64,000 nt of DNA from Dimorphilus gyrociliatus (GCA_904063045.1 CAJFCJ010000019.1:2543179-2607178), one strand, 5' to 3'; shown: positions 7,240 through 40,538, counted from the stretch's first letter. Program-made: numbers and translations. Notes: a model not told the origin generated them from the sequence alone.

Positions 7240-8532
7240 TTAATTAATGGCCGAAGGAGAATGTAAACTGCTGAAATCCAATAGATTTCCAACATTCAAG
7301 TTATCCAGAGCACGATCTAGTTCATCCCTATTGGATTCTTCCCATGGGTGACCAGCTTCGCTTATTGGGGACGGAGCTATAGGTGTTGATAACCCAGATT
7401 TGCCGGAAGCCTCATTTTGAGACTCCTCCATTGAATATTTCTCCCACCACTCTGGTGGTTTTATGCCAACTCCTGATACAGTCAAATCCAAAGCCCCACC
7501 GCTGCAGAGATCAAGGGGACTGTCTTGATCGTCGGTACACAGATCTGCATCTCTTAGCAATTCCTCCAGTTCGTCTGGAGTGTCCTGATGATTTCTATTG
7601 GTGCCGTCTATAATCTGCTCAGTTTTCATTTTCATACCCCCGACATCTATGTCTTGTTCGAGGAGAGCATTCCAAGAAATATCTTCGGCTGCCAAGGTCG
7701 AATCGCTAGACGAATCGACGATGGCATCGGGACGGAGTTCTGGCTCTTGTTTCACAACAACAACCTTTGGTTCGTTACTATTGGCTGCTTCTAATGCTGC
7801 TACAGCCCTCTCAGTTTCGGAAACTTCTTTTTTAATTCGCTTAGGTGTAGGTGTTGTTGGAGCAACAAAGTTTCCAGCATGCCTTCGCTTCTTGAACACT
7901 CCATTTACAAACATATCTGAGTATTCTGGATTTAATTTCCAAAAACCTCCCTTACCGGGTTCATCCTTTCTCCTGGCCACTTTTTGAAAACACTTATTTA
8001 AAGACAAGTTATGACGTATTGAATTTTGCCAACTGGGATCGGCCACTCGGTAATACATATAATTTTCCGTTATCCAAGAATATATACCAGATAACGTAAT
8101 TTTATTCTTCTTACTGGCTTTCATCGCCATACAAATTAAAGTGGCATAGCTATATGGAGGCTTTACGTACGGATTCGTCTTATAATCGATGTTCTCTAAT
8201 GAGTTGGGGGCGGAAGTTTGTCTGAGAAGCCCTACGTGATGAGGGTTGAATAACGACGCATTCATGGGTAGGACGCTATTCGGATCGACGTTCTGCGTAT
8301 GAGGATCCAGCGATCCAACAGGGCTGCTGGGAGCTGATTGAACTTTTTGCGGATTAACAGCCGATGATGGTGACGTTATCGACATAATATTGAGATTTTG
8401 CAGCCAAGTTAAAGAAGTTAAACTATCATCAAGTTGTTCGACTCCATTTGGTGGTGATGAATTCTCCCTAGCCAACCAATTCTGCCTGAGACGGAGTGCC
8501 AAATTCTCCCGTTGACTTGACACGATCGGCAT
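7240..8532 (-). CDS. FOXJ1: Forkhead box J1, single coding exon, about 430 aa
   Basis: Forkhead domain KPPYSYATLICMAM..WQNSIRHNLSLNKCF..DEPGKGGFW plus the FoxJ1 N-terminal motif LDDSLTSLTWLQN. First in-frame ATG is 8532; the ORF-track start at 8631 is a TTG. Confidence 0.95.
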   Translation of the reverse strand: MPIVSSQRENLALRLRQNWLARENSSPPNGVEQLDDSLTSLTWLQNLNIMSITSPSSAVNPQKVQSAPSSPVGSLDPHTQNVDPNSVLPMNASLFNPHHVGLLRQTSAPNSLENIDYKTNPYVKPPYSYATLICMAMKASKKNKITLSGIYSWITENYMYYRVADPSWQNSIRHNLSLNKCFQKVARRKDEPGKGGFWKLNPEYSDMFVNGVFKKRRHAGNFVAPTTPTPKRIKKEVSETERAVAALEAANSNEPKVVVVKQEPELRPDAIVDSSSDSTLAAEDISWNALLEQDIDVGGMKMKTEQIIDGTNRNHQDTPDELEELLRDADLCTDDQDSPLDLCSGGALDLTVSGVGIKPPEWWEKYSMEESQNEASGKSGLSTPIAPSPISEAGHPWEESNRDELDRALDNLNVGNLLDFSSLHSPSAIN

Positions 8533-30600: not shown

Positions 30601-32588
30601 TGTGCGTACACTTGCACCTTTTATTTATTAGACTCTTATGCACTATGCAGAACGTACCGCACACTTCAGAAAAAAAGAAATTTCCCCCGCCTAGGTGCAA
30701 ACTGCCCTCAAGCGCTCTACGACATTACGACGTTTGCATGACACAATCAGCGTCTTATCGAATCGTTCCATCGTTAATATTCTCCTCCTAATCATTTTTA
30801 TCTGCATCAATCAATTTCGTACGACAGATGCGCTCCGTTTATTTTCTTCTATATTGATTATTTAACGCTTTTTATTTGTCCGATTAAGTGAAGATAAATG
30901 TCGCTAGTTCCTCACCCTCAATTATACTTTATTATAGGATAAAACGTCAAAGAATTAGCATACGTCATTCAGGTATGCGGCCCCCCTCCAACACAGTTAA
31001 GTCCTAATAGCTTGTACTTGCTGAGATTTCCCGTCATTTTAGACGCTAGTCGGTATCTAATTTCAATTTGTTCGGCACGAATTGAAAGTTAATAGAATTC
31101 TTTGCGAATATTTCTATTATAAAAGCGAAAAGAACAAACAAAACAAAGGAATGATAGTACTATATGCCTTTTTTATGTATTCCCAAAAACAAAATGGTGA
31201 AAAAGAAATAAACAATTTTATTTATGTTCAACATATGTATAATACATAATTTATGTACAGTATTTACAGAATAAGCTTCATAAATAACTGGTAAATGTTG
31301 TTGAGAAAAGCGCTGTCTTTGCTTTCAATTAATAAATACCAAGTATAAGAGTTATGTACTTAACGCGTGTACACATACACACACACACACTCTCATACTC
31401 ATACTTACATATAAACACATAGATATAAGTGCTCTGTACTCTCTTGTATATTAACATATAAAATTATATATACTTATATAAACATATTTATATATAGATA
31501 TATAACACACATACACGCACACGCGCTTGTACATATTAGAAGTATATTTTATATACTTTTACATGTGTAAACACCTGAGTAGTTTGTTTATAAACACAAT
31601 TTTATAAATAGGTAAATATTTCTGTTAATTCGTTTTACAGAGAGAAGGTACATAACAACGCTTTTCTCTTTCTTTTCACTATTTAATGGCACAATATATG
31701 TTCGTAGGTTTTTTTTTTTATAAAAAAAAAAGAAAAAAAAAACTTACGTTAAACATATTTGTTTTATAAAAAAAAAAACAAAAATACTAGGTTATAAAAA
31801 TATATAAAATCTCACAAAAGAGATATGCATATGAGTGTAAAACAAAACAAAAAAATATAGAATACAGATAATAATAAACTAGATAATGGGAACTAGTAGA
31901 GTGTGAACACAATAAACGGCTAATTATCGATAAATGACGTGCAGACATAAAACGTATGTATAATTGTGAAGTGATAAAAAAAAAGAAGGAAATTAAGGGG
32001 AAAAAAACGAAAGAGGAACTAAATACTAATTATTTACAAACACTTTAAGTTGAAGGAGATCAATGTGAAAACTGAAGAGGAACAACGATGAGAAAATCAG
32101 CGTGATAGACGTATTTCAAAGTCGATTTCAGTCACTTGAACAACATCTGTTGTCTCGTTCGCGGTAAATCAGTCGACAAGAGATACGTGATTATGTATAA
32201 ATGAAAAATATACACTATTATAAGCACCGCGCTGAGCACCAATCTTCTACTACTTCTTCTTTTCGTAATAAGTGCAAGAGAATACATTTATATATGTGAA
32301 GAGAAAGAGTACGTAGTGAGGACCAAAGAGTGAGAAAAGTGGAGATTTATATAAATCAGTACCGTTACTAGCTACTTTTTTTGTTCGGGGAAAAAAATGC
32401 CAGCTAGGTAGAAGCAATCTCGAACTTTTTCCTTCTTTCTTCGATTCATTCCTAGATCAACTGCTGTTATCTGTCCTTCTTTCACCTTCCTTAATGCTTT
32501 TGTTTTTTCTTTTTTCTCTTTATGTACAGAGACACGTAGGCATATATGAACGTAAAAAAGTAAATTGCCTAAGTATATAGCGCGGCTG

Positions 32589-35500
32589 CTAGGGCTGATT
32601 TTCTTCGTGTTCATTTTCGGCTACCAACGAGAGTTTGTGTTTTAGCTTATCAGTTACTTCGCCTGTTTCATCAAATGAAAGTTGAAAAGTAACCGGCCTC
32701 TTTTCTGAATTTTCGTAAATTTCCATTTTGGGATCCGTTGAAGAACCCTCAACTCGTAATTGGGACATTGAGGATACAGGTGTCGAACGTCTGCTTGATG
32801 TAACAAAGACAGATGATATTCGACGGCACAAAGATTCTGACCAACTTGCGTTGGAAGAGTTCTGTTCGGGGAAAAAAAACTTATTGTTAAAAGGGTCATA
32901 ATTAGCCTTAAGCGTAAACCGAGCGGGACACGTGCGGACGGTCGTCTACCTATTCTCACAAAGACATCAGCTATGCAACACTGCACCGCGTTAATTGGCT
33001 AGTAGTGTCTGACGTCACAAAGATCGACGCACGTGTTCAATCGATTTGCATACACGGAGCACCACACAAAGAGACGAGGCGTTTGATGGATTAAAGCGGC
33101 CGAGGCTCGACCGGCCCGGGTCATCCACATATCTTACGCAATATCGCACAATGCTTCGCGACCGTTTCTTTTCTTCTTCTTTATTGCGGGGACAGGTTCA
33201 TGTCACTTTCCGCAACGGTACGCGGCACGCGTCCAAAGTGTTAAATAGCCTCGCGCGCTGTCGTCGGGTAGGAATGGGAGCCCGCGTCAATTAGAGAGCC
33301 GTCAACAAACGTACACTTCTGGGTTAGTTGGCCTTAAGGGCAGCGAATAGAAAGTTGCTTTGATCTATTTACATTGGGTATATATATACTGATTACGTAC
33401 GGTCTACTAAGAGTCGTTCTAATCTATAAATATACGATATATGGAGGGGAACGAAATCGACTACTTTGCACAAAAGCAATTCATCTTCTCTTTTACTCGC
33501 AGGTGCCTAGAGCAAATAAACAAAAGTGCCTCTAGGGCTGACGTCATCTTCGCCTGGTATAGTAGAATGACGAATATCGATAAGTCTAAGATATAAAGGA
33601 TCAGTTTGACGTTAAACGACTCATAAATTGTTCAATTGTAACGTTTCTCAGGCGATAAGCAATACACCAATTGCCGGCAATTAAACATTTGATACTTTGA
33701 CGCCTAAGACAGATTCTTCCAGTGGTTCAACTTGCATTTCAGAGAAACCGGATAGGATCTTATCAGCGTGATTCCGGCAAACTAAAAACGTTACACACTT
33801 AACCCAAGCGTCACGTGTCCGTCGGAAAGTCGACAAATCCCATCCGTCCGTTAAACATACCGATTTTCCATTTGCAACAGGGAAAGGGTGGGGGGGAGGT
33901 GGGTGGGGAGGGCGAGTGAAACTTTGAAGTCAGACGGAGAAAGTTACGGGCGATATTGATAGACGATTAAAGAGCAGAGAGAGAGAGTTTGTTTGTACTA
34001 TATATACAGTATATGTATAGATACGCGAGATGAGATAAATAGATAGGAGGGAGGAGGAGGGAAGATAATTAAATACTAAAATATAAAATGAATACAATTG
34101 CTGTAAAACTTCCCGCACGTAACATTATATAGCCATAAAATATGCGCGATTACACGTGCGTATACGCGTTTATTATAAGTGGGAAACTTCATTTTTACAC
34201 GCAGCAAAAGGCAGTGATGGTGGCGTTTTGTAACTGTCAGCCGCAGATGGTAAGCAAGACGATACGACGATTGTTTTAAAAAGCTGTTGCGCCGTCTAGG
34301 GAGTCTTTTATATAATACCTAACTCTATCTATCTTAAATGTTTATATAAATGTATCAGATTATAGTTCATTATATAAGTTATATTGCCATTTACTATATT
34401 ATATACTATGGTGTATTTATTTCCTTTTTATTTCATTTCCCTTTGTCTAATTCATTGACGTGATCTTTCGCAGGCGGATATGATGAATGACATTTTCATT
34501 ACGAAATTACACAAGGTTTTCTCCCCACAGTAACAGAAAAATAATGTACCGAAATATTGCATTGCTATGGTTATTCTAATGAGGCAGAATATTAATAATA
34601 TTTCCTTTTTATTTAAACATCCCTTAATGCGCGTCAATTCATTTACAAGTTGAACGTAGATTAAAATCGAATAAAACAATAATCTGTCATCGATCAAACA
34701 GAAGTAGAAGAACATTAATCATTCATCGAAAATTAACGCTCACTTTTTACTTTTTTTGTCTATTAAAGGTTGTTATTGAAAAGAGGGACGCGCTCAATTC
34801 GCTTCAGTCGCCCTTTGAAGCTGTAATTCAGCATTTGATAAAGCGGGGTTTGATTACAAGCATCTGATTCAAGTATAATTTATTTTACACATTCAATATA
34901 TTTATATATCTATATATGTATTTATGGACACGTCGCTTTCTTCCATGTGTATTGGATATAAATCTTTTATAGATACCGCCATACAATCGTATACGACTTC
35001 ATAAATCGGTATTGGTTTACAGGTGCGCTCCCCACCGATAAAAGTAAACATCTGATACTCGCCAGGTGCACGCTGCTCATTTCACACAGCTTTACGTAAT
35101 CGAGAGTTTCACGTCATTCTTAACCATACACCTCTCATCGGCCGGAAGGGAAAATTACATACCGACAACGGCACACTTACAGATTAATTTACTCTTCAAT
35201 TAATCTCCTAACTGATAATTCATTTCATTTTTTCCCCTCTTCATAAATTACAATGAGTTATAATGCGCGCGTGCATTACACGAAAGAAACATAAACAGAT
35301 ACTGCATTACAACCATCAAACGCTTTTGCCTCACACATAAGATAAGATAAGATAGGAAAATAAAGGATATATTACCAAACTTTGTAGACTGTCGTGGAAT
35401 TCGTCGGATATTCTCCGCAATTGTTGCCCAACGTATTTGGACTCTTCTTCACAAAAAACCGGCATTGAAATCGCCCTCTTCCGTCTTCCACTATCCACTT

Positions 35501-38445
35501 GGTCCGTCGTCAACACTGAAACATTACAAAATGCCGTTGAAAAACGATTTGCCCACGATCCGCGAACGCTCTTTCTCGCCCCGCCCCTGCCGTTCGATTA
35601 AGCTCCGCCCTTCCTTTCAGTAATGGACACCGCTGCGTTTGAAGTATTCCCGTATTGGGGCACATTGTTACCCGCATTCGAGCATGACACACACACACAC
35701 ATACAGACACAGTCTGCGCGGTGCAGGTGCGCCTTGTGTATAGTGCTAATGAGCGCTTTTTTTCAATACTTAACAAGTAAACCTTCCTATTGAGCGTACA
35801 AAAGTGAAATAAAGGCAATTAGTACCGATTGTTCATTAGTTCTCTTACACAAGCGGTCAATGATTTACAAGTCGTCGAACTATTCATTTACTGAATCAGC
35901 AAAAATTAGTGATGAATATCGAAAGAAAACAAATATTACTAATAGTTTAAATAGAAAAACAACATTAAAAAAAACCATCATACCCATGTGATTAGTCACA
36001 TGATTAAGCTTCCCTTATGATTTGGTTAACCTTATTGGGACAAAGATGGAAGGGGAAAAAAAAAGTTTTGCAGGAGAATAATTATTGCGTAACGAAGTGT
36101 CAAAGAATCTTTAAAAATAATTTTTTATCTTTCGTCAAGTAGTCGCATTAAATTAAGCGACTGCTACAGTAAACATAAAAGCGTCACATAAATCTAAGAC
36201 CAAAAGAGCAGTTACACACTGACAAAACGCAGTAAGTTCCGTCTGGGGAAACGTAAATAGTTTATACAACTCTAAGAATATTGCGGCCAATCAGCGCAAA
36301 GCGACCGTTCTTTGTTTGCCGCCCCGTAACTCTAGCTTAGTCTTCTCTTTACGATTGTAAACAAAGAAATCACGAAATCGTTAATATTAATGACCCGCAT
36401 ACACCGCTGATTGGCCAACGAAAGATAATTAATGTGCGGATCGTTTTTTCGCTCTCAACTTTCTGCTTTTTGCCTTTCATTATTTCGTATATTTACGCCA
36501 ATATGCATTATTGAATAAGTTATTAGACGGCAAAAGCTGAACAATTGCGGTGTGACGATTGAATATTTTTATTTAAATAAAGGCGCCGAGCGGTAGTAAT
36601 AATAAAGATGTCAGGGAAGGCGATACTCTTAGATCTTTGCCGTGTATACTTTTCACAAATAAATATACCGAGGCAATACGCAAACAGACTGTTTTGCTAA
36701 ATAATCAACACGGTTATACAAGGCTAGATCACGCAAAAGAATGTTTTGCTTGAAGACTGTTGACAATGGACAGTAATGAGTGACTTGCCCGAGGGACGCC
36801 TCGCGGGAGAGGAGAATTGCGGAGAAAAAAAAAGGGAAAACTATAAGGGCGGCAATTCTTGCGCTGAGCATGCCAAAACCCAATTACGCATAATTAATGA
36901 CATAGGATGATGACTGATCAAATAGAAGGCGATTAATTTCTTCAGCCAATCCATGCTAAAACTTTTGCTCTCATAAATAGATTGAAATTAATAAAACAAG
37001 TGTCAAAAGTATTAACTCTAAATGTATGTGCGATTAAGAATCTCATATTATTTATACAATCTTACATAATATATACATATGAAAACTTTTTATATACATA
37101 GTCCTATACAAATTTGTCGGCAACGACAAACTCGAGTTGAAACACGTGCATTCTATCAGTCATCTCTTAGCGAGCACCTTAAAAGCGTCAGGGGCACCCT
37201 GAATTGATTACTTCATTTTTCTTCAAAGCTCAAACATTGCGAAATACTCTTTGGCATGCCGCAACGCGTACTGAATAGGCTGTTATATACAAATCTCGAT
37301 TAATAATGCGTATATTTTATATATATAAAGAAAACAATTGATTGTCTATACATGCTGATGTCAGACAACATAAGAGCATAAAATCATCATAAATAGGCAA
37401 GTCATGTGAGAAAGTTTTATCGATAAACGATTCTTGGCACGCGCCTATAGAGATATCTATATTTTAGATGACCAAGTTAAATGTTGTTTCATGTAGTTTC
37501 GAGTGTCATAAAATTACCGTATAAAGTAGAGTGTCGAATTTACTGAGCTACCTTTTCATGAATTTTCGCTTAAGAAATATACGCGTCACGTTTTTTTTAC
37601 GCTTTTCCGGTCGGTCGGCACGTTTTGTAAATGAATATGATGCAAGCATTTAATTTTCTATTATACACATTGACAGCTCAATAGATGATTATGTCACGTG
37701 CAACACCCTTCATTAGGCGAATTATGAATCTGTAGAAGGTCAGCCAAGTTGTTATTTTTGAATAATAGCTAATTTAATACCAGGACGAGTCACGTCCTTA
37801 AATAATCAACAGGTACGTATAGAATATTCTAACGTGTACTTACCGTTCTGAAAAGGCAATTGGGAAGTACAAATTGAAATTGAACGTTTTTTAGAACTCA
37901 TAATCACTGTTTGAGAACTTTTATGCAACTGTCTGTATTCTTTGTTTACAGTAAATAGAAGGTTATCTAATCGCTTCAATCGGTGACTAGCCTGTCAATA
38001 GGCCTCATAAGGTTATAAGGTCATTGACTACTCACCATTTTTCTTTGTTGCCTGCGGTCCTATGCTTTAAATGACTAATTCATATCATCTTACGTTAAGC
38101 GGAAGTTCCTATCAGTCGTAATATGATTTAATAACAATTTGTGAGGTTGTTATCAGGTGATTGAGTTGAAATATGTTAGGGAAAATGTGTTTGTTTTCAA
38201 CTTAGTTAATGGCCACGTAATCTGGTTTGTTGAACATTAATAAAAGTTTTGTGATAAGATGGACTCGCTATTCGGTAAGCAACGAAAAGATATTTGCCAA
38301 GAAAAAAAATTTACTCACCCGGAAAGAAGGAGGAATTCAATCTGGGACTTGATGGTAAACTTAACGACTGTTTCCGTACATTTTGGAAATTAGACGGTAA
38401 AAACACATCGTCGTCAAGGCTTTCCTCGGAAGAGTAATATTGCAT
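32589..38445 (-). CDS. BH3-only pro-apoptotic protein, BAD/BMF-like, 179 aa (187 aa with optional microexon)
   Basis: Exons 38445-38319 (phase 1), optional 38059-38036 (24 nt), 35515-35376, 32861-32589, all with canonical splice sites and matching phases. BH3 YVGQQLRRISDEFHDSL, preceded by RKRAISMP and RKQSLSLP. N-terminal EESLDDDVFLP. Confidence 0.8.
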
Positions 38446-40538
38446 AGCGACTGGCTTGTTGAGGGGGAATGATTGCTAGCGCAGCATGTGCCTGGAACAC
38501 TTCGAGCGGGGCGCTAGTTCCTAGACAAAGGCTTACTCATTCCAGGCAATGGACTTGCACAAACAATCTCCTAGACGACTAGGTCTGGAATAGAATTTCC
38601 AGTCCTGGAAGTGCTTAAATTTGACGTCTAATTCCCTGTGTGCCTGTGATACTGCAATGTTCCAGGAAGAAATTTCGTGCAATTTTAAACAAATCGAACG
38701 TTCTTTTCGCGCGCGCGCTAAAAATGAGGTCACGCGAGATCTCGGCGCTTCCGTTTCTTTGTTTCGAAGAATAGTTGTTTACGGGAAAATTGTTGTTAAT
38801 AACTACTTGTTACCTGCTAAAAGTTGAAAATCCATGAGAAATTAAGCATAACTGGATAGTTGGAAGATTGCCAAGTTTTTTCCAAGGTAAAATTTATAGG
38901 ATTTTTCTACTCTATTGTATTTGCGTGCGGTCAGTCACAAGTTTCACGCCCCGGGCGAACAAGCGGCAATGGGGAGGAAAACTTGTCCTTAGAACGAATT
39001 CTTTGGCCCTTATTTTAGGCATTAAAATTGTTACATTCTCTTTTATTGCTCAACTTAACCTTCCTTCAAAAGCTTAGATCTTTGCGTTCTTATTCTCAAA
39101 GAAAAAAAACAGCAAAAAGAATGATGAAGCATATTGGAAAATGCATCCCTTATTTATTCAATTTTCATGCTCAATGTATCGCGGTGTCAATGACATACGA
39201 GACAAGTAGTTTGACCGCACTGACCGCCTAACTGACCGGAAGTGCTCAGTCAGTTATCCATAGACGCGCATCTGTTTATGGGTAATTGGAATTTTAGTGC
39301 TCAATGATAAAATTGGAGTGCGGCGCAAGGTAACGATAATGACTGCCGGAACAAAGCTGCTTGAGAAACATAAAAGAAACCCGATTAGAGTTATGTCTCT
39401 ATGCCTTGGGGCTATCACGGTCGACTGGCGTCATTTTTTAGAGCCTCGAGATGGCGTAGTTACGAAAGCATTGTACTATTAATCTTTCCAAAATTATAAC
39501 TCGTTGAATCGGCACGTGGTCAAGAGAAGGACTTCGAGTGTGGTCAGTCTCCCACGCGCGCCTAATTCTTGGTGAGCACATGCTCCAGTGTTGGGTAAAG
39601 GGTGGGAGTGTACGTTTCTTGCTCGTTTGCCCCCGTTTGTCAGCTTAAGAGCTTAGAGCTAATTATCGGCCGAATGGGGTTGGACAAAGAGACGCGCCTA
39701 GCTCAAAACGTTTTGTGTACTTACGAAACGATATTTATGCGTTACGAGCTGCATTAATGCAGTCGGAATCGTATTAATGCCTTCGGCTCTAATCATTTAT
39801 TCAAAAGACTCGGCTATAGGTGGAGAAGCGCGTAAATCAATCAATACTCGTATATAGATGATAAGCTGCATGCGAAAGATCGCGGATAAGTATGGAAACT
39901 GTTAATTATATGAATTGTGGCAATAAAAATGGTGATAACTGTCAGTGCTCTTACGCTGCCGACTCTTTACTGCCTTTGTTAACGCGTCTTGTACAGTGAT
40001 GCATGCATATTCGTTTGCAGTTTTGTATGAAACATTTGCCCATCCCATTCGTTTATTTATTCCGCTATTATCAGCTTTGGTTATAAGAGAAAAAAAAATG
40101 TATTAGCTTCTGTTTGCGTAGCTGTATTTTTTCGTTGTTCATACGTAATCGCTACTTAAACGTTGAACAAACTAAAAATTGCTTTGTAGTTTCTACGCTC
40201 GGGCGAATCGACTAATTAAATTCGATCGCAGGTGGTCTCACGATTCTCTTCTGTCTCTTACCGGGCTTCCCGCCACTTCAATGAATTTGATAATTAACGC
40301 TTTAGCCTTTTTTGTATTCTTTAACATCGATGGCAGCGCCATCTCGGTATTGTGTGATAACTAGGCCAGCACATGATCGATTGACCTGAAAGCCTAGAAA
40401 ACAGGCTAAATGGAACTCCGGGTCAGTATTTTGAAATATTCATAGACTTAGACTCTTTTCTGATTGGTTTAAAGTTGTTGCTTAAATAGTATATAAGCGG
40501 GAAAACATTAAATTTAACATTAAACTATCTACGGAAAT

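Follow-up and report, generated by a model that had tools for sequence, protein, structure and literature searches.

A 64,000-nucleotide stretch of the Dimorphilus gyrociliatus genome (GCA_904063045.1 CAJFCJ010000019.1:2543179-2607178; hereafter the window) carries on its minus strand, between positions 32589 and 38445, three exons that together encode a BH3-only protein of 179 amino acids. We consider it likely that these exons form a genuine, apparently unannotated gene, and that its short, mostly disordered product belongs, in a divergent and trimmed form, to an old bilaterian family. An earlier note on this DNA had described the product as a protostome BH3-only protein with the complete phosphorylation switch of BAD. 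D. gyrociliatus is an annelid, so the label of protostome and lophotrochozoan is correct, and profile searches secured the BH3 exon; the completeness of the switch and the identity with BAD held in part, as described below.

A probable three-exon BH3-only gene

A scripted splice of the window sequence joined the three minus-strand exons in frame into 540 nt, which translate into 179 amino acids with zero internal stops, and canonical GT/AG signals flank all of the joined exons. Coding exon 1 (38319..38445) begins with the ATG start and contributes 42 codons plus 1 nt before its donor (CGG/GTGAGT, phase 1). It is followed by intron 1 (35516..38318, 2.8 kb) and by coding exon 2 (35376..35515), which lies between the acceptor tgtaatgtttcag and a phase 0 donor (TTG/GTAATA) and is the exon that defines the family; it carries both an Akt/14-3-3-type site (site 2, see below) and the BH3 motif. 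Intron 2 (32862..35375, 2.5 kb) is in phase 0 and is placed 6 residues past the Phe-His (FH) pair of the BH3. Coding exon 3 (32589..32861) opens at the acceptor gttttttttccccgaacag and supplies 90 codons and a TAG stop; its product is Ser-rich, has an acidic end and lacks a membrane anchor. An upstream coding exon is required, because the frame 5' of the exon-2 acceptor meets a stop without passing an in-frame ATG. The assertion that exons spread over 5.9 kb join in phase to 179 residues was therefore borne out in its coordinates, splice signals and sequence.

Judged by profile comparison, exon 2 is certainly secure as a BH3 exon. When 721 six-frame fragments from 28-41 kb of the window were searched with a profile built on the relatives, its frame scored 41.5 bits (E 5e-12); it scored 32.2 bits (E 1.8e-8) with a second family hidden Markov model (HMM) run on 3,973 fragments of the whole 64-kb window, where nothing else was significant. 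A further family HMM gave 30.6 bits. Exons 1 and 3 were individually non-significant against the family HMMs, and we assessed them among the alternatives that the locus offers. The 5 kb upstream of exon 2 offer 80 ATG..GT phase-1 candidates, of which only two combine a strong donor with at least 10 codons; exon 1 is the longer one. The motif [DE][DE][DE]VF occurs a single time across all six frames of the 64-kb window, and this occurrence is inside exon 1. We therefore regard the assignment of exon 1 as likely. Exon 3 has both the top pyrimidine run (12) and the top open reading frame (ORF; 90 codons) among the 160 phase-0 [CT]AG acceptors that the next 7.9 kb downstream contain, and its Ser-rich product is unlike AT-rich junk. 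It is the best candidate for the 3' exon, is not proven, and is the least certain part of the gene model. Transcription of the gene and the exact joining of its exons are what we infer from these comparisons.

Exon 2 could be real and yet belong to a transcript that is otherwise built, with a cassette or alternative start in intron 1, another 3' exon, or an end within intron 2, an arrangement that we regard as somewhat unlikely. A candidate for such an exon is a 63-nt segment (37844..37906, minus strand) encoding (V)IMSSKKRSISICTSQLPFQN, with the donor ACG/GTAAGT. It reads ...caaacag/TG ATT ATG ... AAC G/GTAAGT and is in phase 1 at both ends, so that it could be inserted in frame. Its donor is strong and its sequence KKRSIS resembles the RKRAIS of exon 2; its acceptor is weak, with a poor pyrimidine tract. 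KKRSIS sits roughly where the first phosphosite of the family would be expected. At the other end, ORF 35331-35516 continues beyond the exon-2 donor, and read-through into intron 2 would add 15 more codons before a stop. Exon 3 shows neither significant homology nor a poly(A) signal, and the long introns are atypical for this genome. However, exon 1 holds the window's sole DDDVF-type motif, which is N-terminal in relatives, the acceptor and ORF of exon 3 are clearly the top of the 160 candidates, and the relatives likewise have three coding exons. We therefore retained the three-exon model.

We also looked for missing family modules around the gene. Neither the introns nor the upstream sequence yielded an exon with the family's RxRxxS[ED]/PLPD or TQT modules. 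A stop-free minus-strand frame at 40084-40155, 1.7 kb upstream of exon 1 and beside the start of a cytochrome P450 gene, reads QRKNTATQTEANTFF and contains TQT; this is the sole TQT nearby on the minus strand and is probably due to chance. Rfam and repeat scans of 31.5-40.6 kb detected no known intronic non-coding RNA and no internal repeats.

Relatives of the exon-2 protein in molluscs, a nemertean and hemichordates

A scan of metagenome contigs with a degenerate pattern returned four eukaryotic loci (L001-L004), all of which encode RRDRSRSEP followed by LRRISDEFHxSYxxL; the two serines are 20 residues apart, and the GT donor that follows is placed as it is in the window gene. Exon 2 aligns gap-free to these exons, with equal spacing (20) and an equal exon end. 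In both L001 and L004, a DDDVF exon lies upstream and an SWWQRV exon downstream, and their BH3 exons exceed the Pfam BAD cut-off (28.6 and 33.6 bits, respectively). These two loci form three-exon genes (L001, 326-2878; L004, 2895-5335) with a GC content of 45-49%, and they blend BAD-like with BMF-like features.

Profile searches seeded with L001-L004 and the window exon recovered named proteins. They came from bivalves (Tegillarca, Sinanodonta, Potamilus, Mytilus, Crassostrea virginica, Mercenaria and Ruditapes), gastropods (Gigantopelta and Batillaria), the nemertean Tubulanus and the hemichordates Ptychodera and Glandiceps. Examples are Crassostrea virginica LOC111129941, Gigantopelta aegis LOC121370143, Tubulanus polymorphus LOC141915267 and proteins of Ptychodera flava and Glandiceps talaboti. 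All named matches are labelled 'uncharacterized' or 'hypothetical', in line with the expectation of the earlier note that BH3-only proteins are rarely annotated in lophotrochozoans. The same note had proposed a profile search as a check; mollusc relatives with conserved motifs were indeed found, although the window protein itself falls below the Pfam BAD cut-off.

The conserved core of the family is R-x-R-x-x-S-x-P, 18-25 residues, and (V/F)G(R/Q)ELRRISDEFHxSY. Of 50 relatives, 48 have R-x-R-x-x-[ST]-x-P, 18-25 residues before the BH3 serine, and almost all of about 50 have LRRISDEF, with the BH3 Ser never replaced by Gly or Ala. In an alignment of 17 rows, Arg(-5), Arg(-3) and the L, R, R, S, D, E and F of the BH3 were invariant, and the site-2 Ser, the BH3 Ile and the His that follows were conserved at 90% or more. 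An RxRxxS[ED] site located upstream and a PLPD motif are further features of most members; [SG]xTQTP is found in all full-length members (240 amino acids or more) and an acidic [DE]3VF motif in many, with DDEVF, DEDVF, DDDVF and EDDVF variants in P0040, P0041, P0045-47 and P0049-52. The full set of modules, namely TQTPxP, the acidic VF motif, RxRxxS, PLPD, RDRSxSLP, LRRISDEF and a C-terminal W-x-S-L-R, is carried by oyster, mussel and clam proteins of 309-355 amino acids (P0042, P0045, P0050, P0052 and others). The window protein fits the definition of the family, with RxRxxSxP, 18-25 residues and LRR[IV]SD[ED]FH on one exon that ends 6-9 residues past FH.

Gene structure is shared as well. 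In Ptychodera, Tubulanus and Gigantopelta, the phosphosites and the BH3 lie on one exon, which ends 8-10 residues past FH; overall, relatives have an intron 6-9 residues past FH. N-terminal and C-terminal exons flank the BH3 exon in Ptychodera and Tubulanus, and the annotated Gigantopelta model consists of the BH3 exon and a C-terminal exon. The three-exon model of the window gene parallels these structures and is thereby supported.

Motifs and predicted structure of the 179-residue protein

The first motif of the protein is acidic, DDDVF (residues 11-15; 38401..38415, minus strand, as for all features of the protein), and is shared with the N-terminal regions of relatives. It is followed by RKQSLSLP (residues 24-31; 38353..38376), a degenerate basophilic site like that around S112 of BAD, with Arg at -5 and Pro at +2, and Gln rather than Arg at -3. 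RKQSLSLP aligns weakly, and non-significantly, to the RDRSxSLP module of the family. Site 2, RKRAISMP (residues 54-61; 35460..35483), combines RxRxxS with Pro at +2 and resembles the Akt/14-3-3-type site at BAD S136; its serine, S59, is encoded at 35466-35468. The BH3 core VGQQLRRISDEF (residues 71-82; 35397..35432) satisfies the BH3 pattern with V71 (h1), L75 (h2), I78 (h3), the small residue S79, D80 and F82 (h4). Within it, LRRISDEF (residues 75-82) forms an RRxS site whose serine, S79 (35406-35408), is inside the BH3, directly before the invariant Asp. S59 and S79 are 20 residues apart.

A single alpha-helix is predicted for residues 65-88 (35379..35450), spanning the BH3, and the preceding site-2 region is predicted to be disordered. 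In an AlphaFold2 model of the exon-2 piece, built on a 27-row alignment, residues 22-45 of the piece were helical with a predicted local distance difference test (pLDDT) score of 90-98, and the N-terminal 20 residues scored 55-62. Serine makes up 19% of the 179-residue protein, TQT is absent from it, and its acidic C-terminus (...VAENEHEENQP) is without a hydrophobic anchor. Pfam found no Bcl-2 domains other than the BH3 in the exons. RKQSLS, RKRAIS and the BH3, the spacing of 20 and the missing C-terminal anchor were thus all as first described, and of the 'complete' BAD switch, the S136-like and S155-like sites, which are invariant or nearly so in the family, stood; the S112-like site lacks Arg at -3.

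Exon 3 contains further basophilic-kinase-type sequences (window 32550-32589 region). Residues 100-108, LCRRISSVF, are a degenerate echo of LRRISDEF without the Asp, and SRRSTP is also present. The relatives, too, bear C-terminal RRxS sites, such as IRRRASF, RQRSYSE and TRRHSQ.

BAD-like and BIM-like features of the family

We ran Pfam on each exon separately. Bcl-2_BAD (PF10514) matched exon 2 with 17.9 bits (E 0.0043; gathering score, 28.2 bits) over profile positions 89-126, covering site 2 and the BH3, and Bclx_interact (PF08945, Bim BH3) matched it with 17.3 bits (E 0.0043; cut-off, 25 bits). Exons 1 and 3 had no Pfam BAD match, and neither Bim_N (PF06773) nor the BMF model (PF15185) matched any window exon. 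Among PDB chains with E<=10, four of the five matches were BAD BH3 peptides and there was no BIM, BMF or PUMA peptide; the best match, GQQLRRMSDEF of the BAD peptide 6fbx_B, is identical to the exon-2 BH3 at 10 of 11 residues. The neighbours of exon 2 in a protein language model were BH3-only families: BMF (including 'Bmf2' clusters), Noxa, PUMA and BIM.

BAD, BIM and BMF were then compared with the family through the Pfam models, the PDB peptides and two snake BIM sequences. Pfam BAD alignments of several relatives are collinear over profile positions 57-158, with 29.7 bits for P0027 (above the cut-off) and 27.2 for P0030, and other relatives scored 14-27 bits; the two retrieved BIM proteins had no PF10514 match. 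An invertebrate-only profile gave 57-67 bits to PF10514-positive exons versus 30-33 bits to BIM. The hemichordate and gastropod members best match BIM BH3 peptides (DVRPEIEVGRELRRISDEFHLSY aligned to the BIM peptide), and the Bim BH3 model scored 42-47 bits on hemichordate-type members; P0027 reached 45 bits with it versus 30 with the BAD model. TQTPSPxxQ is shared by the full-length members and snake BIM, and BIM is collinear with both modules of the family profile. The BMF model gave weak matches to the relatives (12-17 bits).

These comparisons bear on the proposal of strict one-to-one orthology between the window gene and vertebrate BAD, complete with a three-site switch. Its BH3 matches BAD peptides and, at E<=10, no BIM, BMF or PUMA peptide; the Pfam BAD alignment takes in site 2 as well as the BH3, and over positions 57-158 several relatives reach or come close to the PF10514 cut-off; and, as in BAD, there is neither TQT nor a membrane anchor. 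On the other hand, site 1 is degenerate, other members favour BIM peptides and the Bim BH3 model and carry TQTPSPxxQ, and the invertebrate-only profile finds BIM while listing no canonical LRRMSDEF BAD at E<=10. The neighbourhood may speak against orthology as well: we recognised no synteny between the window flanks (P450, mitochondrial carrier, FoxJ1 and RPL38) and the neighbours of human BAD, such as PLCB3 and GPR137. Strict orthology is thus distinctly unlikely. The proposed identity with BAD holds as far as BAD peptides are the best PDB matches, and not in the Pfam score, which stays below the cut-off, or in the relatives, which have BIM features.

We would tentatively suggest, as a scenario that falls short of probable, that an ancestral bilaterian BH3-only gene joined TQTPSP and DDVF with a BIM-like BH3 flank, an Akt/14-3-3 site and an in-helix serine; that BAD, BIM and perhaps BMF divided these modules among them; that lophotrochozoans keep the undivided kinase-gated sensor; and that the D. 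gyrociliatus gene is a minimal, BAD-like derivative of it.

Annotation, transcripts and arguments against a functional gene

The gene appears to be unannotated, because the exon-2 protein is absent from public protein collections although FoxJ1 from the same D. gyrociliatus annotation is present in the same collection. No near-identical protein for exon 2 was found among 1.84 billion cluster representatives, nor in two word-indexed searches with exon-2 words. Three proteins of about 3,500-3,800 amino acids (P0001-P0003) that came up as exon-2 matches in the 1.84-billion library were judged spurious, two of them being without a reported aligned stretch. The median intron in D. gyrociliatus is 66 bp (PMC7854359), and the gene may have been overlooked by annotation because its introns are unusually long for this species.

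RNA runs with sequence words in common with the locus (10-18% of its words) were coral metatranscriptomes. Intron pieces at 32968-33176, 36115-36395, 37152-37302 and 37609-37780 match coral metatranscriptome contigs from two studies with approximately 95-97% identity (reads, 95-99%). These pieces are probably transcribed repeats of D. gyrociliatus or of a close relative living on corals.

Several observations weigh against a functional, kinase-gated BH3-only gene of this structure. Four RNA runs mapped to 32520-38519 covered nothing but intronic repeat fragments, with zero depth on all exons and without joints, and a search of sequencing runs with exon 3 matched DNA-type runs only. The introns of 2.8 and 2.5 kb far exceed the species median. 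The family C-terminal HMM fails to recover exon 3, which leaves the suggestion that its SWS segment echoes the SWT of BAD without statistical support, and neither AATAAA nor ATTAAA was found within 890 nt downstream of exon 3. Exon 2 is under the Pfam BAD cut-off, and single relatives give the window protein no more than about 15-25 bits. Family site 1 (RxRxxS[ED]) and the PLPD and TQT modules are missing from the protein, and position -2 of site 2 is Ala, not the Ser of the canonical 14-3-3 mode-1 motif. Finally, invariance of the sites is not proof of phospho-regulation, because any BH3 needs a small residue before the Asp, and BIM (RRIGDEF) keeps the RR without the Ser.

Some of these observations would also be expected of a decaying or silent pseudogene in a genome that lost many genes, namely the missing annotation and RNA support, the loss of TQT, site 1 and PLPD, and the strong divergence. 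However, none of the three exons is interrupted, their phases agree and their splice sites are intact, and all family-invariant residues are retained amid the divergence, a pattern expected under selection on the motifs; we therefore regard a pseudogene as highly improbable. That ORF fragments with short linear motifs came together by chance, conceivable insofar as such motifs are small, several chance ORFs of at least 80 amino acids occur in the AT-rich window, and exons 1 and 3 are individually non-significant, has a negligible probability and for exon 2 is, by profile comparison, effectively refuted by the E-values of 5e-12 and 1.8e-8, the gap-free alignment with identical spacing and exon end, and the uniqueness of DDDVF in the window.

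A possible kinase-gated mechanism

In mammalian BAD, phosphorylation of S136 and S155 blocks groove binding. By analogy, we infer Bcl-2 binding, phosphorylation and 14-3-3 binding for the window protein. Pro-survival Bcl-2 proteins would receive in their groove the V71, L75, I78 and F82 of its helix, together with D80. Basophilic AGC kinases of the Akt, S6K, RSK or PKA type may phosphorylate S59, which has Arg at -5 and -3, and phospho-S59 would then constitute a 14-3-3 mode-1-like site (R-x-x-pS-x-P) that keeps the protein cytosolic. The same kinases may phosphorylate the in-helix S79 (RRxS) beside the invariant Asp, which would block groove binding. Loss of survival signalling would free the protein and lead to mitochondrial apoptosis. 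We favour this kinase-gated mechanism because Arg-x-Arg, Pro(+2) and Ser are strictly kept across phyla while their surroundings diverge. The earlier note had suggested that growth-factor-gated apoptosis of this kind is ancestral to bilaterians. With the sites invariant or nearly so in about 50 mollusc, nemertean and hemichordate relatives, a switch older than the protostome-deuterostome split is plausible; the conservation of the sites stands, and the function attached to them is by analogy.

Neighbouring genes

The ORFs of the window point to a C2H2 zinc finger gene at 1-3.4 kb, an annexin at 3.7-4.8 kb, FoxJ1 at 7.2-8.6 kb (a single-exon gene, 7243-8532), RPL38 at 14.8-15.1 kb and a mitochondrial carrier at 19-20 kb. 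An exact look-up places FoxJ1 on contig CAJFCJ010000019.1 of GCA_904063045.1, an accession assigned to D. gyrociliatus in a published genome paper (PMC10212961). On the other side of the BH3 gene are a cytochrome P450 (40.5-42.4 kb), a G-protein-coupled receptor (52.3-53.3 kb), an SLC6 transporter (56-58.6 kb) and a nicotinic receptor subunit (62.8-63.8 kb).

Discussion

A 2017 oyster study stated that no BH3-only homologue was known in Mollusca (PMC5550854). A 2022 survey reported Bim/Bad/Bmf-seeded candidates in echinoderms and considered BH3-only proteins 'potentially present' in Lophotrochozoa; published searches seeded with other invertebrate BH3-only proteins failed across protostome branches (PMC8998228). 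In a 2024 survey of lophotrochozoan apoptosis, the section on the Bcl-2 family covers multi-motif members only (PMC11463336). Our literature searches, which had subscription journals outside their coverage, found no described lophotrochozoan or annelid BAD/BIM-like protein. As judged from their sequences, the oyster, mussel and clam members of the family contradict the published absence of BH3-only proteins in Mollusca. The proteins themselves are already in public databases, without informative names.

In spiralians, where mitochondrial apoptosis lacks its upstream sensor, the family is a concrete candidate for this role, and the picture that it suggests is of a kinase-gated spiralian BH3-only sensor that would unite features of BAD and BIM. 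It makes two questions testable, namely whether survival-kinase gating arose before the protostome-deuterostome split, and whether BAD and BIM had a shared ancestor. The 179-residue protein would be a naturally minimised version and thus handy for biochemistry.

Comparison to BH3-only proteins already known

Common to the window gene and the unnamed invertebrate family are site 2, the BH3 with its FH-x-S-(Y/L) tail, an acidic VF motif and the intron just past the BH3. It differs in length, with 179 amino acids versus 280-355 in full-length bivalve and hemichordate members, and in a serine spacing of 20 versus 22-24 in molluscs.

C. elegans EGL-1, Drosophila Sayonara and the schistosome and Hydra BH3-only proteins are short and have only the BH3, a motif for binding Bcl-2-fold proteins, in common with the window protein. 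We saw no relation beyond the LxxxxD core, and none of them was retrieved in our searches.

The likeness to BMF lies in an acidic DDVF near the N-terminus, where BMF has EDDVF, and in the TQT and W-containing post-BH3 segment of the relatives. Unlike for BMF itself, the BMF model misses the window exons, and the BH3 sequence differs. BIM (BCL2L11) shares ELRRI-x-DEF with the window gene and RPEI..ELRRI.DEF..Y.RR with the relatives. The window protein, in contrast, is without TQT, Bim_N and a hydrophobic anchor and has Ser rather than Gly before the Asp, and the fetched BIM sequences lack RxRxxSxP at the position of the window protein.

BAD shares the GxxLRRxSDEF core, an RxRxxSxP site 20 residues before the BH3 serine in the window protein (19 in mouse BAD), RRxS within the BH3, a disordered character and the missing anchor; as a working model, the window protein would be regulated like a sensitizer, by Akt or PKA and 14-3-3. 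It differs in that h3 of the window protein is Ile, as in BIM, not Met, and that the S112-like site is without Arg at -3; to our knowledge, the N-terminal DDDVF is not found in mammalian BAD. On sequence comparison, the window protein is the most BAD-like variant of its family (short, with no TQT, no anchor and a BAD-type BH3) and also the most reduced. The family as a whole, which may stand near the common ancestor of both proteins, appears best described as BAD/BIM-like rather than as a one-to-one BAD orthologue, because it joins BAD-type phosphosites with BIM/BMF-type TQTPSP, the RPEI...ELRRIxDEF..Y flank and the acidic DDVF.

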